The notes beneath the pieces were generated by a model that saw nothing but the letters and a program-made list of their open reading frames with translations, was not told the DNA's origin and made no database searches. Made by a program: the position numbers and the translations under genes. From positions 248,001 to 312,000 of IMG/VR virus record IMGVR_UViG_3300025121_000011: 64,000 nucleotides of DNA. One strand, given 5' to 3'. Shown here one piece after another: positions 30,224-61,354 of this stretch (position 1 is its first letter; each line of letters starts with the position of its first letter).

Positions 30224-30308
30224 GGGGGCGTGGCGGAAAGGCAGACGCGTCAGACTTAAAATCTGGTGAGCTTAGCTCGTGTGGGTTCAAGTCCCACCGC
30301 CCCTACCA
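30224..30308 (+). tRNA. trnL: tRNA-Leu(TAA)
   Basis: Full cloverleaf with variable arm, anticodon loop CT-TAA-AA, GGTTCAAGTCC T-arm and encoded CCA. Confidence 0.95.
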
Positions 30309-32689: not shown

Positions 32690-32782
32690 GTCTTTCCCGG
32701 CGATAAAAACCGGGAAAGACATCTCTGCTTCCTCAGATGATCGATTAAACTGCTTTCGGGACAAGCTTTCGGGTTTGTCCCG
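32690..32782 (-). CRISPR. solitary repeat-spacer unit (crRNA-like)
   Basis: Hairpin GTCTTTCCCGG-N9-CCGGGAAAGAC resembling the I-G-like repeat, followed by 27 nt identical to 47951-47977. Confidence 0.55.
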
Positions 32783-33342: not shown

Positions 33343-33413
33343 CCGGTGGTAGCTCAGCAAGGTTAGAGCGCTCAGACAACTGAGAAAACGCGGGTTCAAT
33401 TCCCGCCCCCGTA
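33343..33413 (+). ncRNA. tRNA-like element or pseudo-tRNA
   Basis: Canonical D-arm and T-arm, but the anticodon arm has a 4-nt loop, the acceptor stem is imperfect and there is no CCA. Confidence 0.5.
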
Positions 33414-35602: not shown

Positions 35603-35947
35603 ATGAGGAGGGTTGATATGTATTATATCATCTTCGAACGAGGACCAGATGCAACAAAGAAGCTTGTTGTTGGACCATTTTATACGGTTCTAATCACACT
35701 CGATTTGTTGCGAGTAGATGATTGCAAAACCTTGGCATCATTTAGTGGATACACGCTCAATAGTGATGTTCAACCTTATTGGTGGATTGAATATATTTTT
35801 CCGCCAGGGATTGAAGATCATTTTCAAGATATAACTATTTCAATCACTTCTCCCACAAACTCTCCAGACGGATTCATCGAACTGGATGATAGTGGAGACA
35901 ATCCTTTGAGGGCAAACTATTGGACGAACCCTACGTATTCAACCTGA
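35603..35947 (+). CDS. hypothetical protein
   Basis: 114-aa ORF. Confidence 0.55.
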   Translation: MRRVDMYYIIFERGPDATKKLVVGPFYTVLITLDLLRVDDCKTLASFSGYTLNSDVQPYWWIEYIFPPGIEDHFQDITISITSPTNSPDGFIELDDSGDNPLRANYWTNPTYST

Positions 35948-36210
35948 CAAATTGCAACGCTGATGTGTGCGAGCTATTTCCAGCAGACTTGATTAAGGCA
36001 CAACGCATCGGATTTGCCGATCTCCAGGTTGGAGATTTGATCTTATCCTTTACTGATGATTATAAGCCAGCGTGGAATGAGGTTACGTTTGTTTCTCGCA
36101 AATACGAATTAATGCGCGTGTATTGGAGCGTAGACAACGGTGAGCGATATATGTGTTGGGGTGATACTCCAATATACATCAAAAAGAAACTAAAACAGGA
36201 GGTTGCATGA
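35920..36210 (+). CDS. hypothetical protein (paralog of 36535-36834)
   Basis: FN..ADVCE..RIxFAxLxxGDLILSxxDDxxPA shared between the two. Confidence 0.65.
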   Translation: MDEPYVFNLTNCNADVCELFPADLIKAQRIGFADLQVGDLILSFTDDYKPAWNEVTFVSRKYELMRVYWSVDNGERYMCWGDTPIYIKKKLKQEVA

Positions 36211-36226: not shown

Positions 36227-36512
36227 GTATTAATGGGGCCCGGCTTCTGTCGCCGGGAAGGACGAAGTATCCGAAGGATTTACGACCGAGAAAAGCTGTT
36301 GCTTCAATGGGGCCCGGCTTCTGTCGCCGGGAAGGACTTGAAGAGAAGGGTCCGAAGGATTTGAGACCAGGAGCTTCAATAGAGGGCCTAAGTCTGCAAG
36401 GAACACATCTTTAATCTTATTATATCTCTGCTTCCATAGGTTAGCGAGTCCCTTCCGATAAGGAAGGGACTCTGTCTATCTTCAACAGGGGACTTCTGCT
36501 GCCGGGAAGAAA
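36227..36512 (-). CRISPR. cas-less CRISPR mini-array, type I-G(I-U)-like repeats plus a type III-like unit
   Basis: 37-nt repeats at 36227-36263 and 36301-36337 (minus strand GTCCTTCCCGGCGACAGAAGCCGGGCCCCATTGAAGC). Spacers of 37, 35 and 39 nt, a hybrid repeat at 36373-36400, a hairpin repeat at 36440-36476 and a degenerate repeat at about 36479-36512. Confidence 0.85.
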
Positions 36513-36534
36513 TAAGAATAGGAGGTTGTAAGTT

Positions 36535-36834
36535 ATGAGTCACTATTGGAGGTTTAACTCTCAGGATTCTCATGCAGATGTGTGTGAAGATTATGGAGTA
36601 GAACAACTTGGAGTAACACGCATTCGATTTGCCTATCTTAAATTTGGAGATCTAATTCTGTCTATTGATGACGATAATAGACCTGCTTATAACTTAGTGG
36701 TTTATGTTTTACTAAAGGAAGACAAGGTAATTTGGGAAGTAGAAGGTGTTCGATATATATCTTCAAAAGAAAGCGCGGTGTATGTAGACAGCGCAGTGCA
36801 TGTTAAAAATCGAGAAGCAGAAACAAACGGCTGA
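36535..36834 (+). CDS. hypothetical protein (paralog of 35920-36210)
   Basis: GGAGG RBS; shared motifs. Confidence 0.7.
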   Translation: MSHYWRFNSQDSHADVCEDYGVEQLGVTRIRFAYLKFGDLILSIDDDNRPAYNLVVYVLLKEDKVIWEVEGVRYISSKESAVYVDSAVHVKNREAETNG

Positions 36835-38204: not shown

Positions 38205-38426
38205 ATGCAAACTATAATCATTCGTATCGCAGACTCTGAATGCGAAGCGGAAGACTCGAATAATTACTCCGTCATTACCGTTAACCGAGACTATCTTACT
38301 TCGGTATTAAAAATACTGAATGAAAGTAACCTGGTTCAGTATTTCTATGTCTCTGATGGAGTTAACTTGTTTGATCAAGTTTCGCTGGGATATGATCACA
38401 ATGCTTATCCAAAGTTGGTTAAGTAA
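38205..38426 (+). CDS. hypothetical protein (tandem paralog 1)
   Basis: YFYVSDGVxLFDQxxLGYDxNAYPK shared with the next gene. Confidence 0.7.
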   Translation: MQTIIIRIADSECEAEDSNNYSVITVNRDYLTSVLKILNESNLVQYFYVSDGVNLFDQVSLGYDHNAYPKLVK

Positions 38427-38496
38427 CCTTTGGTGGATTAAGTGACTTTTAACTCTCTTTAGGTAAATACAAATTCTCATTCATACGGAGATACTC

Positions 38497-38733
38497 ATGC
38501 AAATGGTAATTATTCGCGTCGCATACTTTTCTTTCTACTTTGAAGGTCTAAAAGTAGAAGGGCAAAAGGGTTATTCGGTCATTACCGTTGAACGATCATA
38601 TCTTACTCCGATGTTGGAAATGCTGAACGCAAGTGATCGTGTCGAGTATTTCTATGTCTCTGATGGAGTTGGATTGTTTGATCAGGCTGCGTTAGGATAT
38701 GATCGCAATGCTTATCCAAAGTGGGCTTACTAA
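38497..38733 (+). CDS. hypothetical protein (tandem paralog 2)
   Basis: Duplicate of the previous gene, including upstream sequence. Confidence 0.7.
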   Translation: MQMVIIRVAYFSFYFEGLKVEGQKGYSVITVERSYLTPMLEMLNASDRVEYFYVSDGVGLFDQAALGYDRNAYPKWAY

Positions 38734-39021
38734 CCTTTAGTGGATTAACTAACCTTTTCGCAAGTTTCCGCTGAGTCTCGACGCAGAATAACAAGGAGAA
38801 TAAAGCTATGAAAATTTATATCATTGCAATGTCTGATAACGGTGGATGTTGGATTCCCGGATCGGAATTTTTTTCAATTTTTGCAATGCAGAAAAAGCTT
38901 TAGCTCTCCGCAAGGAGAAGAAACCTTATCTCTGAATCTATACTCTTCGCGCTGTTGATTCTGAAACTCCCGCTCTTTAGACATGGGCACATATGCGTTC
39001 ATTTAACCGTAGGAGTATAAA

Positions 39022-47242: not shown

Positions 47243-47540
47243 GTTTTACCTATTCCAACTGAATTGCGAGAGCGAAAAAGAGTGGATTGATTTTTATTAT
47301 GGTTTATCAGTCCTCCTTCATATTTAGTTATATAATTGCTTATACGGTTGTTTTAGATGTTTTGTCTATATTTAAATAGCAATATACAAAAGATATACGT
47401 CTAAGAAAAGTTTGAATTAAGTAAAAATATTTAGATAGCGATAAAATTCAGTATCTGTTGAGTTTGTTAGAGAAATTTATACACAAATTGATGAAGTTAA
47501 TATCATTGGGTATTATTCTTCTTATGATGTTATTCATGTT

Positions 47541-47607
47541 GATGTTAACCGATGAACAGAAGAAATCGGTGATATATAATATGGATGCAATTGGAGGTTG
47601 GAAATGA
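47541..47607 (+). pseudogene. 3' remnant of a fourth copy of the Imm5-like tandem gene
   Basis: GATGTTAACCGATGAACAGAAGAAA...ATGGATG..ATTGG..TTGGAAATGA matches the 3' ends of copies 1 and 2. Confidence 0.7.
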
Positions 47608-48104
47608 TCTCATCAAGAGATTTGATTCTTTTTATTAATCCTCCAAAATATTTATCCGTATTGATTGCTTATACAGTTGCCGCAGATGTTCTGCCTATAT
47701 TTGAAAAGCATTTTCCGAAGGATTTGAGACCGAGAAAAGCTGTTGAAGCGTCTAAGATGTATTTGGATGGATATGCGGTTGATGCTGCTGCTTATGTTGA
47801 TGCTCCTTCTGCTCATTATGCTCCTTCTGCTCATTATGCTGCTGTTGCTGTTAATGCTGCTGATGCTTATGCTGCTGCTAATGCTGCTGCTAATGCTGTT
47901 TATTTTACGGCCAAAGATTCTTCCGAAGAACACATCTTTAACCTAATTTTATCTCTGCTTCCTCAGATGATCGATTATGCTGTTGAAAATCAAGTTAAGT
48001 TATTCACCGGGTCTGGAGACTTCTCAGAAATATTTGAGATGTTAACCGATGAACAGAAGAAGCTGGTGATATACAATATGGATGTAATTGGGAATTGGAA
48101 ATGA
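47604..48104 (+). CDS. Imm5-like Ala/Tyr-rich protein, copy 1
   Basis: AADVLPIFEKHFPKDLRPRKAVEASKMYL plus Ala-rich variable core; ATGA-coupled tandem. Confidence 0.7.
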   Translation: MISSRDLILFINPPKYLSVLIAYTVAADVLPIFEKHFPKDLRPRKAVEASKMYLDGYAVDAAAYVDAPSAHYAPSAHYAAVAVNAADAYAAANAAANAVYFTAKDSSEEHIFNLILSLLPQMIDYAVENQVKLFTGSGDFSEIFEMLTDEQKKLVIYNMDVIGNWK

Positions 48105-48658
48105 TTTCATCAAAAGATTTGGTTTTATTCATTAATCCTCCTAAATATTTATCCGTATTGATTGCTTATACAGTTGCCGCAGATGTTCTGCCTATATTTG
48201 AAAAGCATTTTCCGAAGGATTTGAGACCGAGAAAAGCTGTTGAAGCGTCTAAGATGTATTTGGATGGATATGCGGTTGATTCTGCTACCGCTGTTAATGC
48301 TGCTAATGCTGCTGCTAATGCTGCTTATGCTGCTGTTAATACTGCTGCTAATGCTGCTGCTAATGCTGCTGCTTATGCTGCTGCTTATGCTGCTGCTTAT
48401 GCTGTTTATTATGTTGATGCTACTGATGTTGCTGCTAATGCTGCTTATGCTGCTTGTTATGCAGCCAAAGCCTCTTCCGAAGAACACATCTTTAATCTTA
48501 TTCTATCTCTGCTTCCTCAGATGATCAATTATGCTGTTGAAAATCAAATCAAGTTGTTCACCGGACCTGGAGATTTCTCAGAGATATTTGAGATGTTAAC
48601 CGATGAACAGAAGAAGCTGGTGATATACAATATGGATGTAATTGGGAATTGGAAATGA
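48101..48658 (+). CDS. Imm5-like Ala/Tyr-rich protein, copy 2
   Basis: Near-identical flanks to copy 1, longer variable core. Confidence 0.7.
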   Translation: MISSKDLVLFINPPKYLSVLIAYTVAADVLPIFEKHFPKDLRPRKAVEASKMYLDGYAVDSATAVNAANAAANAAYAAVNTAANAAANAAAYAAAYAAAYAVYYVDATDVAANAAYAACYAAKASSEEHIFNLILSLLPQMINYAVENQIKLFTGPGDFSEIFEMLTDEQKKLVIYNMDVIGNWK

Positions 48659-49164
48659 TTTCATCAAAAGATTTGGTTTTATTCATTAATCCTCCTAAAT
48701 ATTTATCTGTATTGATTGCTTATACAGTTGCCGCAGATGTTCTGCCTATATTTGAAGAGAAGTATCCGAAGGATTTAAGACCGAGAAAAGCTGTTGAAGT
48801 TGCTAAGATGTATTTGGAAGGATATGCTGCTGATGCTTATGATGCTGCTATTTATTATGTTACTGATGCTGCTTATGCTATTGATGCCACTGTTTATGCT
48901 GCTAATGCTGCTTATTATGCTGCTTATGCTGCTTATGCTGTTACTTATAATTCTGATGCTGCCTATGCCGCTTATTATGCAGCTAAAGCTTCTTCCGAAG
49001 AACACATCTTCAACCTGATTTTATCTCTGCTTCCTCAGATGATCAATTATGCTGTTGAAAATCAAATTAAGTTATTCACAGGACCCGGAGATTTCTCAGG
49101 AATATTTGAGATGTTAACCGATGAACAGAAGAAGCTGGTGATATTCAATATGGATGTAATTTAA
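48655..49164 (+). CDS. Imm5-like Ala/Tyr-rich protein, copy 3
   Basis: Near-identical flanks, distinct variable core. Confidence 0.7.
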   Translation: MISSKDLVLFINPPKYLSVLIAYTVAADVLPIFEEKYPKDLRPRKAVEVAKMYLEGYAADAYDAAIYYVTDAAYAIDATVYAANAAYYAAYAAYAVTYNSDAAYAAYYAAKASSEEHIFNLILSLLPQMINYAVENQIKLFTGPGDFSGIFEMLTDEQKKLVIFNMDVI

Positions 49165-49194: not shown

Positions 49195-50160
49195 ATGAAG
49201 CTTGAAGAAATTGGTTTTTATAGTTTGCACGATGAGCGAGCCAAAAATACTTCGTCCTCTTCTCCTATGCAACGATGCGAAGTTTTAATTACGGAGGATT
49301 GCAATTTTAGTTGTCCTTATTGCAAGATGAAGAAGAATAGTTCTTATCTTTCTTTTGAAGATGCAAAAACCCTTATTGATTATTGGGCAGATGATGGATT
49401 AGTTAATATTCGATTCTCCGGAGGAGAGCCGACTATGAATCCGTATCTTTATCAGATGGTAGAATATGCTAAGAGTCGCGAGATTAAACGGATAGCTATT
49501 TCTACCAATGGCTCCATGGTAACCGAGGTTTATCACGATCTGGTTCAAGCGGGAGTAAATGACTTCTCTATTTCACTTGATGCTTGTTGTGCATCTGATG
49601 GAGATATTATGGCAGGTGGTGTTGAGGGCTCTTTTAATAGGGTGATTGAAAATATCAAATATTTGTCAGCAAGAACATATGTTACGGTAGGAGTTGTTAT
49701 TACTCATGAGAATGTTTCTAATGTGGCGAATATTGTTCGTTTTGCTCATGAACTTGGAGTTGCGGATATTCGCTTGATTTCTGCTGCACAATATAATGTT
49801 CTTTTAAAAGGAGTAGAGGATATCGATCCACAGATACTTGAGGCTCACCCGATTCTTAAGTATCGAGTTAATAATATTTTAGCCGGCCATAATGTGCGCG
49901 GTATGAAAGATTGTGATTCTCATACTTGTTATTTAATTCAGGACGATTCTGTGGTAGTTAATGGGAAGCATTATCCTTGTGTTATTCATATGAGGGAAAG
50001 TGGTAAACCAATTGGAAAGATTGGACCAAATATGCGACAGGAAAGAATTGCTTGGATGAAAAATCATGATCCTCATGATGACCCGATATGCAGATCGAAT
50101 TGCTTGGATATTTGTATTCTATACTCTAATAAGGTAAGATCATTTCACAAGGACATTTAA
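49195..50160 (+). CDS. radical SAM protein
   Basis: CNFSCPYC cluster motif, FSGGEPT, ISTNG, SISLD. Confidence 0.9.
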   Translation: MKLEEIGFYSLHDERAKNTSSSSPMQRCEVLITEDCNFSCPYCKMKKNSSYLSFEDAKTLIDYWADDGLVNIRFSGGEPTMNPYLYQMVEYAKSREIKRIAISTNGSMVTEVYHDLVQAGVNDFSISLDACCASDGDIMAGGVEGSFNRVIENIKYLSARTYVTVGVVITHENVSNVANIVRFAHELGVADIRLISAAQYNVLLKGVEDIDPQILEAHPILKYRVNNILAGHNVRGMKDCDSHTCYLIQDDSVVVNGKHYPCVIHMRESGKPIGKIGPNMRQERIAWMKNHDPHDDPICRSNCLDICILYSNKVRSFHKDI

Positions 50161-50197
50161 ACTAGTTAAACATAAAAACTAAAAATATGAGGTAATA

Positions 50198-51286
50198 ATG
50201 CGATTTATTCATTTTCCAAAAATTGGTCAATTCAAGGATGCTATTCATTCGATTCGTCAACGAGGCGCTTATGTAGGTAGAGATGTTAATGGCGATATTA
50301 TTTATGATAGTTCTATTTTGATGCCAAAAATTACATTCATTGGTTCTGTTAAAATGCATGGTACTAATTCTGCTGTATCTTTTCATCGTATGGAAGGAGT
50401 GAGGCAGGCTCAATCTAGGAATAAGATTTTATCTATAGAATCAGATAACAATGGATTTTGTAGATTTACAGAGTCTATTCCCGAAGATGTTTGGGATTTT
50501 CTTTTTAATTCTCTATTATCTCCACTAATTACTGAGCCATATCTTTTTGGACGAGTAACGGTTTTTGGAGAATGGATTGGTCCCGGTGTTCAGGGTGGTG
50601 AAATTGGTATTAAATATCTTCCGAATAAAATCTTTGTAGTGTTCGGAGTATATGTTGGGGAGCGTGATGAATTAGAAGATAAAACTCCCACCGGATACTT
50701 TGTTCCTCTTTGTGATATTCCATCTTTCAATGATGAATCTTATCATCTGAATGATAATAGAATTTATTTAATTACTGATTTAGCTCCAACTTTCAAAATA
50801 GAAGTCGATTGTAATTATCCAGAAATTTCTAGGAATAAGTTGGTCGAATTAACTATGCAAGTTGAAGCTAAGTGCCCAGTCGCCAATTACTTTGGAATTG
50901 AAGGAACGGGAGAGGGCATCGTATGGTGCTCAATTACGGAAGGGTGGATGGGTCCAGATTTTTGGTTTAAGACCAAGGGAGAAAAGCATTCCGCTTCAAA
51001 GATAAAAAAGATAGCCGAAGTAGATGTAACAAAGGTAGAGGGAGTAATTGCGTTTTTAGAAGAGACTCTAACTGAAGTTAGATTGAATCAAGCTTTGGAA
51101 TACTTAAAAGAAAAAGAGATGCCTATCGATCGAAGTAGCACAGGCGAGTTTGTTCGGTGGATGATCAATGACGTTACTACTGAAGAGGCTATAATGATGG
51201 AAGCCTCAGGACTTACAGTAAAAGAAGTTGGTCCCAAATTAGGCACAGCCGCCAGGCAGTGGTTTTTTAATCAACTTAATAAGTAG
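50198..51286 (+). CDS. RNA ligase, Rnl2-like family
   Basis: VKMHGTN motif I, FGEWIG, FVVFGV, GEGIVW, FKTKGEKH. Confidence 0.85.
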   Translation: MRFIHFPKIGQFKDAIHSIRQRGAYVGRDVNGDIIYDSSILMPKITFIGSVKMHGTNSAVSFHRMEGVRQAQSRNKILSIESDNNGFCRFTESIPEDVWDFLFNSLLSPLITEPYLFGRVTVFGEWIGPGVQGGEIGIKYLPNKIFVVFGVYVGERDELEDKTPTGYFVPLCDIPSFNDESYHLNDNRIYLITDLAPTFKIEVDCNYPEISRNKLVELTMQVEAKCPVANYFGIEGTGEGIVWCSITEGWMGPDFWFKTKGEKHSASKIKKIAEVDVTKVEGVIAFLEETLTEVRLNQALEYLKEKEMPIDRSSTGEFVRWMINDVTTEEAIMMEASGLTVKEVGPKLGTAARQWFFNQLNK

Positions 51287-51289
51287 GAG

Positions 51290-51535
51290 ATGTCCATGTC
51301 TTTTACATTTGTTAATGTACTTTTCATTCTCTTTATTTATATGATAGTTTTTGGTTATCCACTTCGTGGTATAATTTTATTATTTTTATGGATAATAGAT
51401 TGTTTTCCAGAAACAAAACATGATCGTTTGTTAATAATTTCTTCATGTATACTTCCAGTATTTGGAGAGTGTGTGGTTCTTTGGTTCTTAATTAAGCAAA
51501 TGATTAAGTGGATAAAGGAGGGAAAAGGTGATTAA
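51290..51535 (+). CDS. small membrane protein
   Basis: Two hydrophobic helices. Confidence 0.55.
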   Translation: MSMSFTFVNVLFILFIYMIVFGYPLRGIILLFLWIIDCFPETKHDRLLIISSCILPVFGECVVLWFLIKQMIKWIKEGKGD

Positions 51536-51854
51536 AATTAACGGTAAAACATTTTTTACAACTAATATTTCAAATGTTTCTATTCGTAATAATGAAATAT
51601 ATATCGACGGAAAGTTGGTAGGCGATAGTAAAGATGCAGAACAGGGTATTCTTACTGTCAAGATTGAGGGTAATTTGGTTAGCTTAATTTGTGATGCAAC
51701 AGTAGAAGTAACAGGCAATGTAAATGGTAGCATTAGCGCTGGTAACTCTGTTTACTGTGGTAATGTTAATGGAAATGTTAATTGTGGAAATTCTGCTCAT
51801 TGTAATAATATTGAAGGCAATGTAACTGCTGGAAATTCGGTTCATAAATTATAA
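51528..51854 (+). CDS. beta-repeat (G-N-V-x-G) protein
   Basis: VTGNVNGSISAGNSVYCGNVNGNVNCGNS repeats. Confidence 0.6.
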   Translation: MIKINGKTFFTTNISNVSIRNNEIYIDGKLVGDSKDAEQGILTVKIEGNLVSLICDATVEVTGNVNGSISAGNSVYCGNVNGNVNCGNSAHCNNIEGNVTAGNSVHKL

Positions 51855-52149
51855 AGAATTGATTCTTGTAATAAAATTTATGTAGTCGAAAAGATTATTA
51901 TCTTAGAAAAAAAAGTATCAAGATAATGTATCGATATAAAGCCACGGGATTGCTTTGATTTAGCGTAAGGATGGCGGACTCAGGTCCGCTATTTGGCGCA
52001 TTGGTTGTCATGGATTAATAGAGGTGATAATTGTATAATAAAAGTTTTATTGATCTTAGTAAAGATAAGTCAATGAATTGTAGCTAAGGTTTTATTATTT
52101 TGATTCGAAAATCGATTGTTCAATACTCAGGATAGAAAGGGAAATAATA

Positions 52150-53511
52150 ATGATTATACGATTTACATCGACCAATCCAAACGCACTTGATATTCTTAAA
52201 AAGAATCCAGAAAGTTTTTCAGGTATTCAATTGAGAAGTCATAAAAATGGTGTGGCTATAGGTAGGATTATTTCCGCAAAGATTCCTATTGAATATCATA
52301 TGATCTTTCAAGATACTAAATATAGTTACTCTCAGGATTCCTCTAATCAGATTGATTTTCAAAGTTATTGCAATCCTCGTGCAGCACTTGGTTTAATTGG
52401 AGAGTTACTCCGGCACGTATTAGTATCAGATCAAGATTGGCGGGATACAGATATTCCATGGCTTAACTCTACAATTGGAGAAGTTGATACAAGAGACTTT
52501 AACCACACTATTATAGTAGATAATTTATATGCAGATGGTTTTAACTTAGATGGAGGGCTGGTTTTAGAAAAGTATTTTAAGGAGATTTCTCTAAAAAGAA
52601 ATGGTCAGAATCAGTTTGAGCTAAAGATAGATGTCTGTCGAGATACAATACATTATACCATTAATTTATTGGCTTTTGTATGTATGTATTTGGCGGCAAC
52701 TAATAAACAGCCTTGGTATCTTAACCGAGATATAGCATCAAAATACATTAGAGTTTTAGAAAATATTGGTGACGTGCCATATTTTATTTTATATCTTTTT
52801 GCCCGTTCCTGTCTTCCATCGGAAGAATTATTTAATGAATTCGCTCCTCGATTGGAGAATATTTTTTACAGCTATGATGATCGAGCAAATGATCTAACTA
52901 TGGTATATGGAAATACTCAATCAATGAGATTGCGAAGTATTTCTGATTTGCTTTTAACTAATGATAAAATTTTTTCTAACATTATAGAAATTGGTTGTGG
53001 CGATGGAGATTATCCTCGCCGATTAGCAAAGAAGTTGAATAATGGATTAAGTTGGTGGTCATATGATATTGAAGATCATAGTTATCTTAATCGTAAAATT
53101 CCAGAAATGATGGGAAAATTAGCAACATTTAAATTTACTCAAGAGTGGGATCAAATTCCTTTATTGGATAACCCTATAGTATTGTTAGTAGAAGTAATTG
53201 AGCATATGTCGGTTGAAGAAGCGATAGAATTAATCTGTCGAATTTTAGATAAGCACTCTCCGACACAATTAATTATTACTACTCCAAATAGGACATTTAA
53301 TAATTATTATCGGTTTGATCCCGAAGATGATGGATTTAGACACAGCGATCACAATTTTGAAATGACTCAGGAGCAATTTAAAGAATATATTCTTAGTATC
53401 ATTAAATTGCTCCCATATGATGCATCCTTTTTCGGAATTGGTGATCGAATTGATGCAGATTATACTACTCAAGGAGTGGTATTAACTCGTAAAGATCCTG
53501 GGTCAAGCTAA
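52150..53511 (+). CDS. hen1: Hen1-like 3'-terminal RNA 2'-O-methyltransferase
   Basis: N-terminal ILKKNP Hen1-L-type region; IIEIGCGDG, EVIEHM, IITTPN and FRHSDHNFE motifs. Confidence 0.85.
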   Translation: MIIRFTSTNPNALDILKKNPESFSGIQLRSHKNGVAIGRIISAKIPIEYHMIFQDTKYSYSQDSSNQIDFQSYCNPRAALGLIGELLRHVLVSDQDWRDTDIPWLNSTIGEVDTRDFNHTIIVDNLYADGFNLDGGLVLEKYFKEISLKRNGQNQFELKIDVCRDTIHYTINLLAFVCMYLAATNKQPWYLNRDIASKYIRVLENIGDVPYFILYLFARSCLPSEELFNEFAPRLENIFYSYDDRANDLTMVYGNTQSMRLRSISDLLLTNDKIFSNIIEIGCGDGDYPRRLAKKLNNGLSWWSYDIEDHSYLNRKIPEMMGKLATFKFTQEWDQIPLLDNPIVLLVEVIEHMSVEEAIELICRILDKHSPTQLIITTPNRTFNNYYRFDPEDDGFRHSDHNFEMTQEQFKEYILSIIKLLPYDASFFGIGDRIDADYTTQGVVLTRKDPGSS

Positions 53512-53969
53512 TGTGGGGCATTAGTCGTAAAGATTCTAGCCCATGTAATGTAGTACCACCACTTTTTATTAAATATTTAGATTATTTAGTGAGAGATGGA
53601 CAATTATATTATATGAAGAGAAATTCTATAAGTCCATCTGTAATGATTCCAGATTCAGCTTACAGTTGGGGCTGGGATAATGCCGGGAATTATGGATTTG
53701 TTTGGCGCGGACCTAATGCCTATGAAGGGAATTTGCCATCCGATTTAGCTGGAATATTTCCACTGTGGGATATAATTTGGTCTTTTGCTTATCGTTATGA
53801 AAGACATCTTGTAGCAGAACAGAATTGGAATGCAACTCAAAGAGAATACTTTTATATCCTTCCTGATAGATTTTTGGAATTAGAAGAAATAAGAGAGTTA
53901 TGCGAACAAAATCTTTGGGTTGAGGCCGCTTCTTTATATGAGGTTAAGAAAAAAATATGGTGCGATTAA
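53511..53969 (+). CDS. hypothetical protein
   Basis: Coupled ORF. Confidence 0.6.
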   Translation: MWGISRKDSSPCNVVPPLFIKYLDYLVRDGQLYYMKRNSISPSVMIPDSAYSWGWDNAGNYGFVWRGPNAYEGNLPSDLAGIFPLWDIIWSFAYRYERHLVAEQNWNATQREYFYILPDRFLELEEIRELCEQNLWVEAASLYEVKKKIWCD

Positions 53970-54157
53970 CTTTGAAATTTCCAAATATTACTGCTGATAT
54001 TTTAGAGGAAAAGTTAAAGGATGCTGTTGAAAAATTTACATTATCCGCAGAGTATTCTGATGGCGAAGTAATCATTATTGGATCAAAAGAGGCAATTCAT
54101 ATAATTCAAAAGGCATATAAAATACAACAGATGCTTTCATCTATGACAGTCAATTAG
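53957..54157 (+). CDS. hypothetical protein
   Basis: Coupled ORF. Confidence 0.5.
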   Translation: MVRLTLKFPNITADILEEKLKDAVEKFTLSAEYSDGEVIIIGSKEAIHIIQKAYKIQQMLSSMTVN

Positions 54158-54167
54158 TGAGGCTTGC

Positions 54168-54578
54168 ATGTCTGATTATGAGTTTGAATCAAATAGTTTG
54201 TTAAATGCTCTTCAACACATTGATTGGGATAAGTTAGTTCTTAATAAAAATTCAGGTATGGCACGTTTGCTTACTGGAAGAGATGATTCTATTCCACTTA
54301 ATAAAATACAAGTGAAGATTGTGTATTCAGATTATAATCCGGTTGGATGGGCTTGGGTTTTTCCATATATTGATTATGATGGCCGTCGGCGCCTCGGATT
54401 TATGATTTTTATTCAAAGAGAATATCGTCGCAAAGGCTTGGGATCTAAATTGTTAGATTGGGGTCGAAACATTGCACGTCAAAAGCACATTAAATTTATT
54501 GTATATCCATGGGATAAAAAAGGACATTTGTTTTTTGAATCAGCCGGAATAACAAGTAGAAACAAAGGGGACTGGTAA
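54168..54578 (+). CDS. GNAT-family acetyltransferase
   Basis: FIQREYRRKGLGSKLL acetyl-CoA-binding motif A. Confidence 0.8.
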   Translation: MSDYEFESNSLLNALQHIDWDKLVLNKNSGMARLLTGRDDSIPLNKIQVKIVYSDYNPVGWAWVFPYIDYDGRRRLGFMIFIQREYRRKGLGSKLLDWGRNIARQKHIKFIVYPWDKKGHLFFESAGITSRNKGDW

Positions 54579-55804
54579 TGGGTAAACGATATTTAACTGA
54601 AAAAGAAGAGGGGCGTATTCGTCGAGCTATTAAGCAGAAGATTCAGTTTTTTTCGCCTACTATCTCTCCAGCTCCAAAAGATATGACTCGTAGAGAGATT
54701 GAAAGCATTCGTTCTGCAATCATGATTTATCATGAAGCTGGTATGAAAGGTGTTGTTATTCAACCAAAGTATATGGGTTCTTATTGTGATATTTATTTGC
54801 ATCGAGATCTTGATAAGACTAAATTTTATTCTCGTCGTGGTTATGAAGTTAGACTTGATTTTGAAATCTTGATTCAAGCAGTTAAATATTTGCATAATAA
54901 GTTTTTTTCCGATGAGTGTGAAATTAATTTTAAAGATGCAGAATTAATCATTATTCAATCCGAGCTTATGCCTTGGCATGCTTTAGGTGGAGGATTAATT
55001 GAGCGAGATTTTGGAGGGTATGAAATCTCTCACCGTATTCACCAAAGGTATTTTGCATCTACTGGCATTAAAAAAGATGTAGAGTCTTTAACAGAAGATC
55101 CGATTTATCGTCAATTTTTAGAAGATAAGTGTGTTATGGATCGTAAGACACTTCTTAAAAAGTATCCAATGCATATTGCTTCTCAATATGAAGCTTTAGA
55201 AGCTCTTGCTTTTCCAGATGTAGAACAGTATCTTCAAGATATTGAAGTTTATTCCGAACAGCTTTCTCTATATGGTTCGGCAGGAGAATTGCATTTTAAA
55301 CCTTTTAATATTTTAAAGATTGTATATTGTGATGGGCGGGAGGTAATTCCTGGTGATCATAAATTTGGATTTTTATCAGTGAGATTAAATCAAGAAGAAA
55401 ATCCAATGTTTGAAATCGATTTCTCAACACCAGAATTGGATAAACAAATCGATTTAGCTTATAAATTCTTTAATACATTAACTGATGATAAAAAGATGGA
55501 GGGAGTAATTATCAAGCCGATTGGGATATGGAATCCTGATGTTGCACCAATGTTTAAGGTTCGAAATAATAATTACTTACAAATGATTTATGGTGTCAAT
55601 TTTCAGCGTGAGTATGATTATTATCTTAATAAACGAAGCATTGGTGGAAAAGTAAGGGCTTCTAAAAACCAATGGAATATTGCACAAGAAATTATTAAAA
55701 TTCCTATGACGGAAATTAGTGATGACAATGTTAATTACACCAAATTAATTCGTGGTAGAATTTATGAAGAAGATTATGAGAGGTTGTTAGATTCTAGATT
55801 ATAA
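54578..55804 (+). CDS. stand-alone ligase domain of bacterial Pnkp (RNA repair)
   Basis: VIQPKYMGS, ELMPW, FKPFNILK, MEGVIIKP, FKVRNNNYLQMIYG. Confidence 0.85.
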   Translation: MGKRYLTEKEEGRIRRAIKQKIQFFSPTISPAPKDMTRREIESIRSAIMIYHEAGMKGVVIQPKYMGSYCDIYLHRDLDKTKFYSRRGYEVRLDFEILIQAVKYLHNKFFSDECEINFKDAELIIIQSELMPWHALGGGLIERDFGGYEISHRIHQRYFASTGIKKDVESLTEDPIYRQFLEDKCVMDRKTLLKKYPMHIASQYEALEALAFPDVEQYLQDIEVYSEQLSLYGSAGELHFKPFNILKIVYCDGREVIPGDHKFGFLSVRLNQEENPMFEIDFSTPELDKQIDLAYKFFNTLTDDKKMEGVIIKPIGIWNPDVAPMFKVRNNNYLQMIYGVNFQREYDYYLNKRSIGGKVRASKNQWNIAQEIIKIPMTEISDDNVNYTKLIRGRIYEEDYERLLDSRL

Positions 55805-55820
55805 ACAAAAGGTGGTGTAG

Positions 55821-56315
55821 ATGTCTTCTGGTCATGATTCTCAATTGCAAGATGTATTAAGACTTTATGGTTATAAATGTTTTTGGTGCAGAACTGATAT
55901 AGTCAGGGTTTCTTCTTATAGAAAGATGTCTTCGCATGAAAAATCTAAATATAGGGTTGCTACGATAGATCATCTTCTTCCGCAATCTTTTGCTGGCACC
56001 AATAATTTAAAAAATTTACGACCATCTTGTACTGATTGTAATGGGGCGCGAGGTAATGGTTGGCATAAAGATGAGGCAGAAGTTTTCCCAAGTTGTCCAT
56101 TATTGCAAAAGTTAGAGAAGGAAAAGAAAAATCTCAATATTAAACTTAGTTTTCCGGATTCTACAAAGTGGCATGCTAAGTGGGGTTCTCGTTTGAGATA
56201 TACAATTCTTCCTTATGTATCGAAACAGGAGGGAGAAGATACGGAGATTAAACTGGATTTAATTTCCGAAGAAATGAATCTGGAGATTCTTAATGAAGGC
56301 TCTGAATTGGATTAA
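55821..56315 (+). CDS. HNH endonuclease
   Basis: CFWC..ATIDHLLP..GTNNLKNLRPSCTDCNGARG. Confidence 0.85.
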   Translation: MSSGHDSQLQDVLRLYGYKCFWCRTDIVRVSSYRKMSSHEKSKYRVATIDHLLPQSFAGTNNLKNLRPSCTDCNGARGNGWHKDEAEVFPSCPLLQKLEKEKKNLNIKLSFPDSTKWHAKWGSRLRYTILPYVSKQEGEDTEIKLDLISEEMNLEILNEGSELD

Positions 56316-56535
56316 AGTTATTAAAGCAGAAGAAAATGATGATGAAACTTTTTATCAACTTCGTAAGTTAATTCGTGTTTCAGATATTCGTGATATAGAT
56401 GAGTTAACTTATGAAAATGATGATGGAGAATCTGAGTTTTCTGGATGTTTAATTAATTTTTATGATGGAGACTCCATTAGAGTCTTTGATTCTTATGAGG
56501 AGCTTTACGAAAGTTTAGAAGGAGTTTTAAAATGA
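56293..56535 (+). CDS. acidic hypothetical protein
   Basis: ORF in operon. Confidence 0.55.
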   Translation: MKALNWIKVIKAEENDDETFYQLRKLIRVSDIRDIDELTYENDDGESEFSGCLINFYDGDSIRVFDSYEELYESLEGVLK

Positions 56536-57071
56536 CGCCAATTTTAGTATTGCTTATTATGATGTTTATTCAAATAGGATTTGGAATAATTTGGTCTATA
56601 CTGAAATATAAAAAGAATACGAAAAATAGCGGTTCTCTTGAATCTGAAGTAGAATTTTTGGAAAAGAAGATTAATGAACTTAATAAATATAATTCAAAGT
56701 TAGAAAAAAAAGTTACGTCTCAGTTAGATTCCTTGAATAAATTCGTAGAAGCTTCAAAAACTCAGACGGTTAAGTATGTAAACCCAAAAATTGAAGAACT
56801 TGAAGATAAACCCCATTTGTTTACTTATAGAGGAAGTATTGTAAAGAATTTAAAGATAATGGAAGAAGATTTAAAATCTTTATCAAATGGCGGGCGATGC
56901 AAGGTTGAGTTAACGGTTAAGGTGATTGGAGGATGGAAAGCTCACCTTATGAAGACTTGGACTTGTCCAAAGACTGAGCACAGATATGATATATTATCAG
57001 AGCATATAAAAATATCTCCTTATAGAGGCACAGCAGATCAGATTATAAGTGAGATAAAAGGAGTCTGTTAG
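56532..57071 (+). CDS. membrane-anchored coiled-coil protein
   Basis: N-terminal TM followed by heptad-rich segment. Confidence 0.6.
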   Translation: MTPILVLLIMMFIQIGFGIIWSILKYKKNTKNSGSLESEVEFLEKKINELNKYNSKLEKKVTSQLDSLNKFVEASKTQTVKYVNPKIEELEDKPHLFTYRGSIVKNLKIMEEDLKSLSNGGRCKVELTVKVIGGWKAHLMKTWTCPKTEHRYDILSEHIKISPYRGTADQIISEIKGVC

Positions 57072-57677
57072 ATCCGTTTTGGGGTCTCGCTAAAGATGGT
57101 GAATATATTTTTGATTATCCAATCATATTTGAAGTCGGCGTATATCTTGATACTTCTAATAGGATTGCTCCTGAAGTACATGAGGTTCAAATTGCAATTC
57201 CAGTTGTCACAGTAGAAATTGTAGAGAAGCCAATTTTCATAGAGGTGGAACCAGAATCTACTCTTGATATGCAGGAGGTCAAAGATCTAATTGCCTCGCA
57301 ATTAGAAGTTGAGCTATCTCTGTTAGATGCTTCTAAGAAGAAAAATTTAGCATCACATTCAGGCATTAGGACTATTGGAGGCTGAAGTTGGTGTCAATAT
57401 TGATGATACTTGTTGATTTAGCAGAGTTACGGACTAATGTTGACTTGTCATGCAGTTCTTATCGTATAAGACTTGGGTGTTCTAATGGCAATAGATGGGC
57501 GAAGTTGAGGCAAATTATCTCAACTTCGCCCAAAGGCGGCAAAAACTTGGCAGTGCAATTACTACTAAGTTTAGTTATTGTCTTATTAAAAAAAATGCCG
57601 TCGTAATACATGGGCATAAAGAACAAGATAACCAAAACCCTTAGCTGGAAGTATATTGACTTTACTCGGAGGAAATC

Positions 57678-58022
57678 ATGGGTGACCGTATTAAATTTGA
57701 TTGGGTGACAGGAAAAACCTGTAATGTTTCAGAACTTGAACGAGATATCGATGAGTATCTTAGGGATAATGCTGGAGCGTCAAATATTGTTAAGCTAAGG
57801 ACCGCCACAGAAGGTGGAAAGAATTTTACTACACCTCGAAAGACTATTGTAGAGGCGAAAGTTAGAATTCCAATTTTTCAAGGTGTTCGTCGATTTAAAA
57901 AGCTTGAAATTAAAACTGACGAACAGATTGCGGAAGAAAAGAAACTTGCTGAAAATGAAGCGAGGTTAGTTGAGCGTCGTCGTCAACGTGCGGAAAGAGT
58001 TCTCATGGAGAAGGCTGGATAA
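57678..58022 (+). CDS. hypothetical protein
   Basis: GGAGG RBS; header at about 57535. Confidence 0.7.
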   Translation: MGDRIKFDWVTGKTCNVSELERDIDEYLRDNAGASNIVKLRTATEGGKNFTTPRKTIVEAKVRIPIFQGVRRFKKLEIKTDEQIAEEKKLAENEARLVERRRQRAERVLMEKAG

Positions 58023-58083
58023 TCATAAATAATAGACCACTTTAATTAAAGTAGTAAATTTATAAAATTTTTCGGAGGAAACC

Positions 58084-58428
58084 ATGATTGACACTAATGA
58101 AGTTATTATTAAAACTGAGATTGGAACCTTTGCTCTTGTTCGGGATATGGAGCGATTTGAGCGATATTGGATTACTCGTGATGGACGGTGTCCCGGTGCG
58201 CTAAAAAACGATAATATCGGGATGGTTGTTCCAGCTATATTTAGTATGGAACTTTATGCCATGGCTTTGGAAGAGGGATATTCTGTAGATTCTTTGTCTA
58301 CACCTAAGCGTCCGATCAAGGAACATACTTCTAATCCGCGTGAGGCAAAGGCCCCGTCTGGTAAGCTGAAGATTAAGATTTCTATGAAGCCTCGTATTGT
58401 AACTCGTGGTGAAGCCATTATTAATTAG
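58084..58428 (+). CDS. hypothetical protein
   Basis: GGAGG RBS. Confidence 0.7.
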   Translation: MIDTNEVIIKTEIGTFALVRDMERFERYWITRDGRCPGALKNDNIGMVVPAIFSMELYAMALEEGYSVDSLSTPKRPIKEHTSNPREAKAPSGKLKIKISMKPRIVTRGEAIIN

Positions 58429-58466
58429 TTTAATGCATAGTGCTCAACCTATGATAAGAGGTTAAT

Positions 58467-59027
58467 ATGATTGATGTTGAGGCTTTGTATTTAGAGATAA
58501 ATGCTGCGCATTTTAAAAATAGTCTACCCGCGGATCTTCCAATCGAATGGAATTATAGTTTGCGCACAACAGCGGGAAGGTGTCATTATAGAGGCATAGG
58601 TTATAGAGTTTCCCCAACCAAGATTGATCTAAATCCACGATTGTTAGATTCTGATGAAAAAATTAGAAACACTTTAACTCATGAGATGGTGCATGCCTGG
58701 TTGATGCTTGATACCGGAGAGTATCATGGTCATGATGTATTTTTTCAACGGAAGATGGATGAAATTGTAGGATACAAGTGTTCACACACGTATCATCAGT
58801 ATGATGTTTCTGATTTGCAGGAGGTGCGAGGTATTGAATATCATTGTCCGAAGCACGGAGTTGTTGGCCATAGAGCCAGAATGCCTCGTGCATATGATCT
58901 TAATCGCTATGTCTGCGATTACTGTGGTAGCAGAATTGAGTTTGTGGATACGCGACCTCCGACTTCTGCTGCTGCATCTCGTAAACAAAAGTCGGGAAAA
59001 TTATCTATTAAGATACGACTTAAATGA
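58467..59027 (+). CDS. SprT-like zinc metalloprotease
   Basis: IEWNYSLRTTAGRC, TLTHEMVHAW, HGHDVFF and C-terminal CDYC. Confidence 0.85.
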   Translation: MIDVEALYLEINAAHFKNSLPADLPIEWNYSLRTTAGRCHYRGIGYRVSPTKIDLNPRLLDSDEKIRNTLTHEMVHAWLMLDTGEYHGHDVFFQRKMDEIVGYKCSHTYHQYDVSDLQEVRGIEYHCPKHGVVGHRARMPRAYDLNRYVCDYCGSRIEFVDTRPPTSAAASRKQKSGKLSIKIRLK

Positions 59028-59039
59028 GTCTAAATTAAA

Positions 59040-59744
59040 ATGATTTGGTATATTGGAGATGTTCATTGTCGAGTTAAAGATATTAAAAAAATCGCCAATG
59101 ATGCAGAATCGTCTTGTAATCCTCCTGCTGTGTTAATTCAAGTTGGAGATTTCGGATGTTTTTGGCCAAATTATACAAAAGAAATGGATGCCTGGATCCA
59201 TGCCCGCGCGTTAACGCGGGAATGGTCTATTCCAATTATTACATGCGGAGGAAATCACGATAATTGGAATTTATTTCTAAAGCTAGAATCAGAAAGTGAT
59301 GCAGATTTACTAGAGATTATTCCAGATTCTGGAATTTTTTATGCTCGTCGTGGGTCTGTAATAGATATTGGCGGCATATCTCACGGATTTTTAGGTGGAG
59401 CATTTTCAACAAATCAGTCTTCTCTTATAGAAAACATAGATTGGTGGCGTCGTGAGGAACCAAATCGAGAAGAGTTCGACAGATTTTATCAAAATCTTTT
59501 AACATATCATCCAGATACAATCATTACGCATGAAGCTCCACGCTGTGTTTCTTATGATAGAATAGGAAGAAATTCAAATACCACAGTTAGGATGTTGGAT
59601 AATTTGTTTTGGATGGCAATGAAAGATGGATATCAACCGAAACGACATTACTACGGACATCATCATATATTAGAAAAAAGAAAAATAGCTGGAACAAAAT
59701 TTTTCTGTTGTGGATACCACGGGGAATATTGGATTCGAGATTAG
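59040..59744 (+). CDS. calcineurin-like metallophosphoesterase
   Basis: GDVH, QVGDFG, GGNHDN, THEAP, GHHH. Confidence 0.85.
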   Translation: MIWYIGDVHCRVKDIKKIANDAESSCNPPAVLIQVGDFGCFWPNYTKEMDAWIHARALTREWSIPIITCGGNHDNWNLFLKLESESDADLLEIIPDSGIFYARRGSVIDIGGISHGFLGGAFSTNQSSLIENIDWWRREEPNREEFDRFYQNLLTYHPDTIITHEAPRCVSYDRIGRNSNTTVRMLDNLFWMAMKDGYQPKRHYYGHHHILEKRKIAGTKFFCCGYHGEYWIRD

Positions 59745-59958
59745 ATTTAAAAAGGAGGCAACTAATGGGCGTGTGGTATCTATGCTGTTTGGCTATCATA
59801 AATATTTATCTAATAAAAATATGTTATGATGTAATCCCAAAAGCAAGAAACTTTGGTGAAAAGTTTCGGGCCTGGGTTGGGCTCGTGGCAAATATTTTTG
59901 CTTTAATTGTTTCTGTTATATTTTTAGTGACATACCTAACTATCTAGGAGGGTTTAAA

Positions 59959-60198
59959 ATGTTGGGGTATTTAATTTTCTGGATTGTTTCTAGAATTATT
60001 ATATTTATTCTAATTTCAAAAAAATTCTATATTTCAAGAAATACAGAGTTGCCATCTGTTGTATGCTTTCTGTCTATACCTATTGTTGGTGAAATGGTTG
60101 TAATTCTAGAAGTTTTATTTTTTACATATGACATCCTTATTCCACGTATTATGATGCGGGTTGGTGGTGTTTGTAACAATCTCACAAGGAAAAAATAA
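59959..60198 (+). CDS. small membrane protein
   Basis: Hydrophobic; GGAGG RBS. Confidence 0.5.
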   Translation: MLGYLIFWIVSRIIIFILISKKFYISRNTELPSVVCFLSIPIVGEMVVILEVLFFTYDILIPRIMMRVGGVCNNLTRKK

Positions 60199-60392
60199 TG
60201 GAATTTATTATTCTATATATTCTTAATAGTCCCGCTGGACTTGTTGTGGTTACCGCCATTATGTTATGGGGGTTGTATGTGGTGGCGGGTATGGGTATGC
60301 GTGCATATCGAGATAATGATTTGGCGACAGGCTTATCATCATTATTGGCGATTTTAATGTATCTTTGTTGTTTTGGCAGCTTTATTCTATAA
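60198..60392 (+). CDS. small membrane protein
   Basis: Hydrophobic. Confidence 0.5.
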   Translation: MEFIILYILNSPAGLVVVTAIMLWGLYVVAGMGMRAYRDNDLATGLSSLLAILMYLCCFGSFIL

Positions 60393-60404
60393 TAGGATAT
60401 TATA

Positions 60405-60674
60405 ATGTCTACACCGGCTATTATTTATTTAGTGCTTGTTATAATGCAACTCTTTTATATGTGGGTTAGGTATTGTCTTGATGTAAATGTAGATGCTCCA
60501 GTCGATACGTTGTCGATCATTATGATTTGTTTGTTATTGCTTTGGGGAGGGTTTTTCGATCCTCCTCATAAAGAGGTTGATTGTTCTACAGATGATGTTG
60601 TTGTGGCAATTCCAAATGGTTATCATCTGGAAAAGATTCAAACTAACATAAAAGATTTAGACTCGGGAATTTAA
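60405..60674 (+). CDS. small membrane protein
   Basis: Hydrophobic; AGGA RBS. Confidence 0.5.
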   Translation: MSTPAIIYLVLVIMQLFYMWVRYCLDVNVDAPVDTLSIIMICLLLLWGGFFDPPHKEVDCSTDDVVVAIPNGYHLEKIQTNIKDLDSGI

Positions 60675-60771
60675 AGGTATCTAGGTTTATAGTAACTTAT
60701 AAAAATATATCTCACGGTAAACTTAAATAGAATAATATAGGATTATTATATCTCAGTGGAAGCTGAGAATT

Positions 60772-61341
60772 TTGTATTTTAATAAACTAAATATAGGAGA
60801 TATTACAGTGGATAAATATGATGATATGGCCGGATTACCACTTTGGAGTATCCCAAAATCTTCGTCTGAGACTCGTTTGCAGTTTATTAAGGATTCTGAA
60901 AAAGATTTATCTGATATTAAATCGATAGATCTAAGAACTCAGGATGGAGTAAAGCTGTTTCATCAAACGATGAATAAATTTGGTTTTCAATTTACTGAAG
61001 GCACAAAGGAAGATGAGAAAATTCTCAAGATTCAACAGGATAATGCTTGTATTATCATGGAGAGTTTAATTGAGGCAGCAAAGATTGGAAAAGAGGGACA
61101 AACAGTTTTAATAGCTACATATCAAAAGGATGTTTTATACGGATTATGTTTTGACTTAGAAAATAAAAGAGTATATAAAACATCGGTTAAGATTGATATG
61201 ACTAAGTATACCAATCAAGATGCTGTTTTGAAAGAAATCTCAGATCTTACAATTGGGTTAACACTTGAAGCATGGGCAAAGCAACAGAATGCTGTTATTG
61301 CTTGGGATGCTGTAAGTATTTTATGCGGTTGTGCTTTTTAA
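60772..61341 (+). CDS. hypothetical protein
   Basis: 189-aa ORF. Confidence 0.6.
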   Translation: MYFNKLNIGDITVDKYDDMAGLPLWSIPKSSSETRLQFIKDSEKDLSDIKSIDLRTQDGVKLFHQTMNKFGFQFTEGTKEDEKILKIQQDNACIIMESLIEAAKIGKEGQTVLIATYQKDVLYGLCFDLENKRVYKTSVKIDMTKYTNQDAVLKEISDLTIGLTLEAWAKQQNAVIAWDAVSILCGCAF

Positions 61342-61354
61342 AAGGAAAAAATAA

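Follow-up and report, generated by a model that had tools for sequence, protein, structure and literature searches.

Loci and proteins of the polyimmunity type, in which immunity-type genes or domains stand in tandem with no linked toxin, were described by Zhang et al. 2012 (PMC3482391). The same study predicted the Imm5 family to provide immunity to DYW deaminases and CdiA-CT, and summarised it as 'mostly alpha; R, D'. Acquired interbacterial defence (AID) arrays of immunity genes on mobile elements are a related case (bioRxiv 10.1101/471110). A further point of reference is SsdAI, the all-helical immunity protein of SsdA, a DYW-like single-strand DNA cytidine deaminase toxin of the type VI secretion system (PDB 7JTU chain B; PMC7901873).

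Here we describe a tandem array of Imm5-like genes (47284–49164) in a 64,000 nt window of a groundwater phage genome, the 335,169-bp IMG/VR record IMGVR_UViG_3300025121_000011. The window covers record positions 248001–312000, and coordinates are given in window numbering unless the record or a locus is named. The record carries 12 intact paralogues of the family in three arrays, plus scattered fragments. Taken together, the data are best explained by an Imm5-like family with cores built by repeat slippage, forming an orphan polyimmunity repertoire, with decayed fragments that are not demonstrably spacers of a CRISPR (clustered regularly interspaced short palindromic repeats) array; we hold this combined reading to be probable by a small measure.

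The Imm5-like array and its cores

Three intact genes follow one another on the + strand: C1 (47604–48104, 166 aa), C2 (48101–48658, 185 aa) and C3 (48655–49164, 169 aa), with each stop codon overlapping the next start within an ATGA. Their ends are nearly identical at the DNA level, with pairwise identities of 90–96% in the N-terminal flank and 92–94% in the C-terminal flank, while the centre differs in length and sequence. The variable cores of C1 (47775–47918), C2 (48272–48472) and C3 (48826–48990), all on the + strand, comprise 48, 67 and 55 codons, of which 44, 61 and 50 by codon count end in T (NNT; 155/170, or 91%). The coupled genes, the similar flanks and the NNT-rich centre had all been reported in a preliminary description of the locus, and hold on closer analysis. 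That description also recognised a fourth copy upstream, as a 3′ remnant. The copy is there, but it is an entire core-less pseudogene rather than a 3′ end. This gene, C0 (approximately 47284–47607, + strand), contains three in-frame stops, and its last codons overlap the start of C1 by ATGA. Its N flank and C-terminal end are recognisable both by translation and by nhmmer (47303–47412, profile 27–137; 47542–47587, profile 318–363), and the central core is gone. The sequence of C0 is identical in two other assemblies (L010 and L012), and C1 is unchanged in these and in a third (L013).

In the record as a whole, the intact paralogues comprise five at the start (one of them across the junction of the record ends), three at 18.8–20.5 kb, C1–C3, and a 24%-identical outlier, D, at 327.4 kb. 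A scan of the record with the Pfam profile Imm5_like (PF21805) exceeds the cut-off at five of the 12 places. Ten of the paralogues have a mean flank DNA identity of 92% (N) and 91% (C), with synonymous divergence (pS) of 0.22 and a ratio of non-synonymous to synonymous divergence (pN/pS) of 0.24, a value that points to purifying selection on the flanks. Their cores, when aligned, are 68% identical, against 62% for codon-shuffled versions of the same cores, and so are barely more similar to each other than shuffled sequence. Core length ranges from 48 to 87 codons, and in every intact copy the frame is kept and there are no stops. About half of the core residues are Ala, followed by Tyr (18%), Val (11%), Asp (6.5%) and Asn (6%). 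Paralogue B1 and the outlier D are unlike the others in having an ordinary, non-repetitive middle. At three otherwise unrelated places (27705–27761, 63719–63796 and 9366–9434), tblastn gives weak matches (E 0.003 to 0.8) to the terminal ~20 residues of the C-terminal domain, which may represent chance or a common short motif.

The core is a coding minisatellite of GCT-GCT-(T/A/G)AT-type units, 9 to 18 nt long. Perfect tandem units are present in C1 (18 nt, twice, encoding APSAHY), in C2 (12 nt; GCTGCTGCTTAT three times and GCTGCTGCTAAT twice) and in paralogue A2 (9 nt, twice). Across the ten paralogues, 616 of 679 core codons are NNT, compared to 385 expected from the synonymous codon usage of the genome (binomial p 6e-87, computed over paralogues that are not independent). 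Most of the excess is found in Ala (GCT 88% versus 41%), Val and Thr, since codons for Tyr, Asn and Asp are already about 87–90% T-ending genome-wide. Four distant homologues, at loci of 73, 55, 43 and 42% GC with mixed background codon usage, have cores in which Ala is encoded almost purely by one codon (GCC 37/41, GCC 42/44, GCT 33/34 and GCC 31/34), and in one of these cores GCC stands alongside AAT/TAT. The tandem units and this purity of either GCC or GCT indicate that the NNT bias reflects the codon purity of amplified short coding units, not a fixed third base. Ala codons other than GCT make up 12% of those in the cores, similar to the synonymous divergence of the flanks (pS 0.22), and third positions therefore show no special protection. 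The NNT codons are what the amplification of units has left behind in this AT-rich genome.

Predicted fold, wider family and proposed function

The Imm5-like assignment, originally made by eye, is supported at threshold by PF21805 (C1 24.3, C2 26.3 and C3 29.9 bits; cut-off 25), and by structure prediction, which leads to a fold match with SsdAI. Imm5 itself (PF14423) gives 13–18 bits for C1–C3; in PHROGs the genes correspond to phrog_38757 (annotated as function unknown), and NCBIfam has no family for them. Residues D40, R42, P43 and R44 are near-invariant among 43 homologues, and the AlphaFold models are all-helical, with a predicted local distance difference test score (pLDDT) of 83 and a predicted template modelling score (pTM) of 0.81 for C3, and 85.5 and 0.82 for C2. 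The family thus shows the mostly alpha character and the conserved Arg and Asp (in a D..RPR motif) by which Imm5 was defined. The conserved ends form a predicted N-terminal helix pair, with the motif FE-x-KYP-x-D-x-RPRKA, and a C-terminal domain of ~55 aa. Between them, the core is modelled as three helices that track core length (61–69, 78–94 and 98–112 in C3; 61–79, 85–103 and 107–124 in C2). When compared to 48,161 solved chains, the C3 model (residues 1–130) matches 7jtu_B (SsdAI) best, with Z 9.9 and a root-mean-square deviation of 3.0 Å over 124 residues. The next matches are two DUF416 structures (Z 8.4 and 8.2), after which Z drops to 4.7.

An exhaustive homologue search returned 938 representative clusters at E ≤ 0.001. 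Homologues display an FE-x-KYP-x-D-x-RPRKAIEAA helix followed by an Ala/Tyr/Asn/Asp core. Neighbour clusters in the Atlas are 88–100% viral, and the four distant homologue loci inspected all lie in a phage or prophage context. An unrelated phage contig (L034) carries five tandem paralogues with conserved flanks and differing cores, and the top hit of the exhaustive search (P0125) is a protein of 2,410 aa with 13 tandem Imm5-like domains. It is adjacent to a 455-aa protein with three such domains on a phage-like contig of 52 kb (L043, 4484–13233), and the two are the fused counterpart of the gene arrays. A tblastn search of 50,697 phage records with C3 (low-complexity filter on) found nothing at 1e-3, blastn matches were to Ala-repeat cores only, and a neighbour-gene scan of IMG/VR for an orthologous locus gave no match.

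Tandem immunity-type genes or domains on a mobile element, with no linked toxin, are thus found in the phage (arrays of five, three and three genes), in L034 (five genes) and in the 13-domain protein. We infer that the arrays are likely to be an orphan polyimmunity repertoire of inhibitors, because the genes are assigned to an immunity family and their modelled fold matches that of an immunity protein, because they occur as arrays and as fusions in a phage context, and because the array lies directly 5′ of RNA-repair genes. Every copy would inhibit, stoichiometrically, its own variant of a toxin or defence effector, which could come from the host, from another bacterium nearby or from a competing phage, and specificity would reside in the Tyr/Asn/Asp face that the core helices present. 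The most favoured targets are toxins of the deaminase type, because SsdAI is the only solved structure with a clear match.

Within the cores, residues Tyr, Asn, Asp and His are enriched at i+3 (z = 10.1), i+4 (3.2) and i+7 (5.7) and depleted at i+1, i+2 and i+5, a spacing predicted to place them on one alpha-helical face. Along with the recurrence of the same layout in L034 and in the 13-domain protein, this agrees with the original suggestion that the fast-diverging Ala/Tyr core could be a specificity surface. A number of points weigh against an inhibitor repertoire with core-based specificity. The i+3/i+4 periodicity arises partly by construction, because the repeat units are three and four residues long, and a low-complexity segment can drift neutrally. 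The fraction of single-domain hits with the motif that also have a core of ≥40% Ala and ≥65% Ala plus Tyr/Asn/Asp/His (57/92) is biased by the query, which itself has an Ala/Tyr core and favours similar hits. C1 is slightly below the PF21805 cut-off, residues 60–80 of the C3 model, part of its core, have low confidence (pLDDT 56–57), and a Z of ~10 should be read with care, as helical bundles can match by arrangement alone. At the sequence level, PDB searches with C3, with the family profile and with a strong Imm5 homologue gave no meaningful link to SsdAI. No partner toxin is known for any copy, and no toxin gene lies beside any of the four distant homologues inspected. The phage record has no DYW_deaminase or Toxin-deaminase domain over the cut-off, a weak negative since the control genomes also had none over the cut-off and, for Toxin-deaminase, no hit at all.

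If the proteins are not inhibitors, then the Ala/Tyr segment might be a helical spacer, prone to slippage and tolerated, in a protein whose role is structural, regulatory or unknown, and the arrays would persist because their sequence is prone to duplication, not through selection for diversity. In favour of this view, the PHROGs families (phrog_38757, phrog_21347 and phrog_18326) are all annotated as of unknown function, and no partner is known. Some strains have also lost a copy or carry it in shortened or degraded form (C0, C2 in L010 and L013, and the remnants described below), and the cores resemble each other little more than shuffled sequence, as an unconstrained repeat does. The view fits less well with the constraint on the flanks (pN/pS 0.24) and the intact frame through 48–87 core codons, or with core composition and helical spacing that are kept across genomes of 42–73% GC. 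The multi-copy, different-core layout also recurs in divergent phages and in the 13-domain fusion, and the modelled fold matches that of a proven immunity protein, SsdAI. We consider a non-inhibitor role unlikely.

The inhibitor repertoire may be taken a step further. It is conceivable, though doubtful, that an Ala scaffold with Tyr/Asn/Asp at i+3/i+4 forms a natural minimal binding library, in which new specificities arise by slippage and shuffling of 9–18-nt units, are kept as arrays or fusions, and are aimed at polymorphic toxins and defence effectors of hosts or rivals. Synthetic binder libraries of Tyr, Ala, Asp and Ser provide a comparison. If true, such a library would work like the diversification of antibodies, or that by diversity-generating retroelements (DGRs), with no dedicated enzyme needed. 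Should the copies be inhibitors with specificity in the core, they would represent a widespread, unstudied family of phage counter-measures with a very simple means of diversification. They would then be candidates for anti-toxin and anti-defence screens, and a compact helical scaffold for engineered binders.

Probable remnants at 36.3 kb, strain variation and assembly

The sole CRISPR-like structure of the genome lies upstream of the array, at 36228–36520, and consists of two 36-nt repeats followed by degenerate copies. The repeat, R, is a GC-rich hairpin. Copy 1 (36228–36263) has three mismatches at its 5′ end, and copy 2 (36302–36337) shows, on the minus strand, a sub-threshold resemblance to Rfam CRISPR-DR16 (17.6 versus 35 bits). 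Between them is segment A (36264–36301, + strand, 38 nt), which differs at one position from the part of C3 and paralogue A2 that encodes KYPKDLRPRKAV (nhmmer E 2.6e-8). The following sequence (36337–36448, + strand) can be divided into 'spacer B', a 'degenerate repeat' and 'spacer C', with six (B) and four (C) mismatches to the family flanks. However, all three parts fall within a single nhmmer hit (profile 96–254, E 8.5e-12), a colinear, core-less remnant made up of the N-flank motif, a junction and the C-flank EHIFNLI..LLP. A second colinear remnant (31166–31336, + strand; profile 96–270, E 6.8e-12) has the N-flank motif, a short AVYAAYDNAAVYG core and LPQMIDYAVE with a 1-nt insertion, and its 5′ neighbour is the last 12 nt of R. 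A small C-flank fragment of the family is found at 32722–32754 (+ strand, E 8.4e-7). Because they are colinear with the family gene, the segments are read as remnants, and the 36-kb locus is probably a set of gene remnants around a duplicated hairpin. The sequences at 31.2, 32.7 and 36.3 kb would all be decayed fragments of further family members. The repeat/remnant locus is flanked exactly by a tandem pair of paralogous small genes (35920–36210 and 36535–36834), and is preceded by a truncated duplicate of the start of the second gene (ATGAGTCAT...).

Virus-borne mini-CRISPR arrays are very short repeat-segment units that are used in inter-viral conflict. The 36-kb locus is similar in being a short repeat-segment-repeat structure with a segment that nearly matches genes of close relatives, and might be a real mini-array or guide RNA aimed at the Imm5-like genes of rival phages. 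Its 36-nt repeats are near-identical, contain an internal palindrome, are spaced at 74 nt with a 38-nt segment between them, and are much better conserved than the segments. The reverse complement of R ends in ATTGAAG, and a permissive Rfam scan gives weak, full-length resemblances of R to CRISPR-DR16 (17.6 bits, E 0.31) and DR20 (14 bits, E 7.4). A single mismatch between segment A and the phage's own genes is also what would be expected of a spacer directed at relatives.

Other properties make this improbable. At 36228–36520 there are fewer than three near-identical, regular repeats: R has two copies at ≤3 mismatches in the window and two at ≤8 in the genome. At gathering score, Rfam identifies only tRNAs, and no CRISPR repeat. 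In exact-match scans, the 19-nt core of R gives single chance hits only in 185,579 genomes and none in IMG/VR. A 27-nt stretch of R, scanned for in 241 million metagenome contigs, is confined to this phage and a close relative, with two occurrences in each. These scans found no array of R in any of the three collections, and so the repeat points to no host. None of segments A–C has a perfect protospacer in any related contig, and the folding energy of the repeat region is ordinary (z -0.3). The record has no Cas1 and no TnpB/Cas12f-like domain, other effectors (e.g., compact phage Cas12 variants) not having been screened. Finally, six assemblies with differing Imm5 repertoires share 361 nt of the locus without a single change, so there is no spacer turnover. 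Unlike virus-borne mini-CRISPR arrays, the locus has a repeat that belongs to no host or array searched, and it is embedded in colinear gene remnants, with 31166–31336 showing a similar layout.

Of the earlier interpretation of this region, the match of the segments to the conserved flanks stands (36264–36440), but their identity as CRISPR spacers is not confirmed. Nor is there support for the idea that the family is a spacer target or a hotspot of spacer acquisition, given the lack of turnover in six assemblies and of relatives of the repeat elsewhere. More generally, a short segment between repeats may pass for a self-targeting CRISPR spacer when it matches a gene family present in many copies. 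In a 336-kb relative (L005, 18624–20442), a resolvase gene and a Cas12f1-like/TnpB gene form an IS607-type element a few kb from the second Imm5-like array. Since the genome containing the window has no TnpB-like match, this element is an insertion difference between close strains.

Assemblies with an identical radical-SAM (S-adenosylmethionine) gene downstream of the array differ in the copies they carry at the array locus. One (L012) has the same three genes as C1–C3, base for base. C2 is missing from a 333-kb contig (L010), and in L013 it is internally deleted and frameshifted. Another paralogue stands ahead of C3 in L014, and the same paralogue is found in a different array of the 336-kb relative, while L011 has one copy only, a different one. 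Between strains, a core either has a counterpart of 100% identity or shows background similarity, and near-matches are few. Among these, P0012 corresponds to paralogue A2 with an AAN unit missing, P0010 corresponds to B3 except that the core begins with residues of another paralogue (a 5′ core patch), P0015 joins the first half of A3 to another second half, and P0004 is C3 carrying the N-terminus of A2. In a phase-variable contingency locus, length changes of a simple-sequence repeat within a population switch a gene on or off. Here, unit changes between strains, as compared in assembled contigs, are multiples of 3 nt, the deletion in L013 being the single frameshifting case, and recombination breakpoints lie both inside and beside the core. 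The cores have diversified by repeat slippage, recombination between paralogues, and the gain, loss and movement of genes between arrays. Across samples and years they are unchanged apart from unit indels and recombined patches, and, to judge from the available data, the cores change over evolutionary time and not inside a single population.

The variable proteins of DGRs carry hypervariable codons with a fixed third base and a Tyr/Asn/Asp-rich variable surface. The Imm5-like cores are alike in both respects, with 91% NNT codons, variation concentrated at codon positions 1 and 2, and a residue set (Tyr, Asn, Asp, Ser, Thr, His, Val, Ala) that overlaps the products of AAY mutagenesis. Targeted mutagenesis of AAT-type codons, by a DGR or similar system that leaves NNT, is nevertheless very improbable, and a DGR origin of the NNT codons can be regarded as largely refuted. 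The complete 335-kb record gave no match to RVT_1 whereas control genomes did, and no template repeat was found, as all repeats of the array region are paralogous genes. The absence of a reverse transcriptase, together with cores that are identical, one unit or patch apart, or unrelated, argues for slippage and recombination and not hypermutation. The differences between strains are not adenine-directed, Gly, Arg and Leu codons are nearly missing from the cores, the proportion of non-GCT Ala codons matches flank pS, and homologues with GCC beside AAT/TAT fit unit amplification, not a fixed third base. The folds differ as well, the Imm5-like proteins being modelled as helical while those of DGRs are C-type lectin or Ig-like.

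That the triplication is an artefact of assembling a repeated gene has almost no likelihood, even though several contigs (L015–L017) end in the array, Logan contigs are fragmented between 47570 and 49115 (so that they show the presence of the cores, and gene order rests on the assemblies), L010 is without C2 and the terminal repeat of the record lies inside a family member. L012, which was assembled independently, carries the same triplet base for base. In runs from three studies (short Logan contigs), every one of the three unique cores is present at about single-copy flank depth, and each core is distinct and not derivable by collapsing or duplicating another.

The 'direct terminal repeat' of the record (1–127 and 335043–335169), which is the basis of its completeness call, is 127 nt long and lies within the conserved N flank of an Imm5-like gene. 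The record ends therefore fall in a multi-copy repeat, and the call of completeness rests on a short repeat inside a repeated gene. The paralogue that spans the junction is confirmed internally in the contig of a relative.

Genomic surroundings and related systems

On its 5′ side the array is bordered by genes for a Band_7 protein and a REC-like protein. Directly 3′ (49195–62000, and in loci L010–L014) are genes for a MoaA/SPASM-like radical SAM enzyme, an RNA ligase, a Hen1-like protein, an acetyltransferase, a Pnkp-type ligase and an HNH protein. The RNA ligase, Hen1 and Pnkp genes form an RNA-repair module, a type of module that acts against toxins which cleave tRNA; the radical SAM enzyme shows generic MoaA/SPASM-like similarity and nothing more specific. 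These neighbours prompted the idea that the Tyr/Asn/Asp/His (NAY) codons serve as a sensor of queuosine-tRNA damage, which was set aside as too speculative. In a promoter/terminator scan of the array, promoters were no more frequent than the shuffled expectation.

The region 10000–37000 differs from the remainder of the window in its GC content (43–48% versus 30–37% elsewhere) and has small genes of 90–290 aa. It contains ~22–24 copies of a conserved intergenic module, consisting of a TGGCA...TGCCA hairpin, GGCGGCAAAAG, CTCTAAAAAGATAT..GTAACTAA and then a ribosome-binding site, which suggests either a promoter/terminator unit in many copies or a region of cassettes. Every Imm5-like remnant outside the array falls within this block. 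At its low-GC/high-GC boundary (9996–10166) are tandem repeats of 57 nt (x1.9, 100%) and 34 nt (x2.4, 97%). Genes for tRNA-Leu(taa) and tRNA-Lys(ttt) are found at 30224 and 33158, and a third tRNA (33343–33413) is detected by Rfam only (36 bits) and not called by ARAGORN. A second tandem pair of paralogous small genes is present at 38264–38450 and 38571–38757.

Among known proteins, SsdAI comes closest to the C3 model in structure, and both are all-alpha. SsdAI, which has a protrusion that contacts its toxin, is ~55 residues longer than the C3 model over the aligned span, and its gene adjoins that of its toxin in a bacterium, whereas the phage genes are orphans in multiple copies. With Pfam Imm5 and Imm5_like the family has in common a profile match at threshold and the D..RPR motif. 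The definition of Imm5 drew on gene linkage with toxins of the DYW deaminase or CdiA-CT type, and the phage genes have no such linked toxin; the phage branch is also predominantly viral, and has an extra C-terminal domain and a low-complexity Ala/Tyr core. Phage proteins of phrog_38757, phrog_21347 and phrog_18326 (e.g., gp10 of Salmonella phage 9NA) likewise have an Ala/Tyr/Asp repeat core, and one homologue (P0068) matches both phrog_38757 and phrog_21347. In contrast to C1–C3, the 9NA protein is encoded by a single copy and begins with a different N-terminal domain, and it has neither the RPRKA motif nor a Pfam hit.

The arrangement of the genes is closest to that of polyimmunity loci and AID arrays. 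In both the known arrays and those of the phage, immunity-type genes stand in tandem on a mobile element without a cognate toxin, and fused versions exist. The known arrays lie in a bacterial chromosome or integrative element and mix immunity families, whereas those described here are carried by a lytic-looking huge phage and belong to one family, with differences in the repeat-built core.

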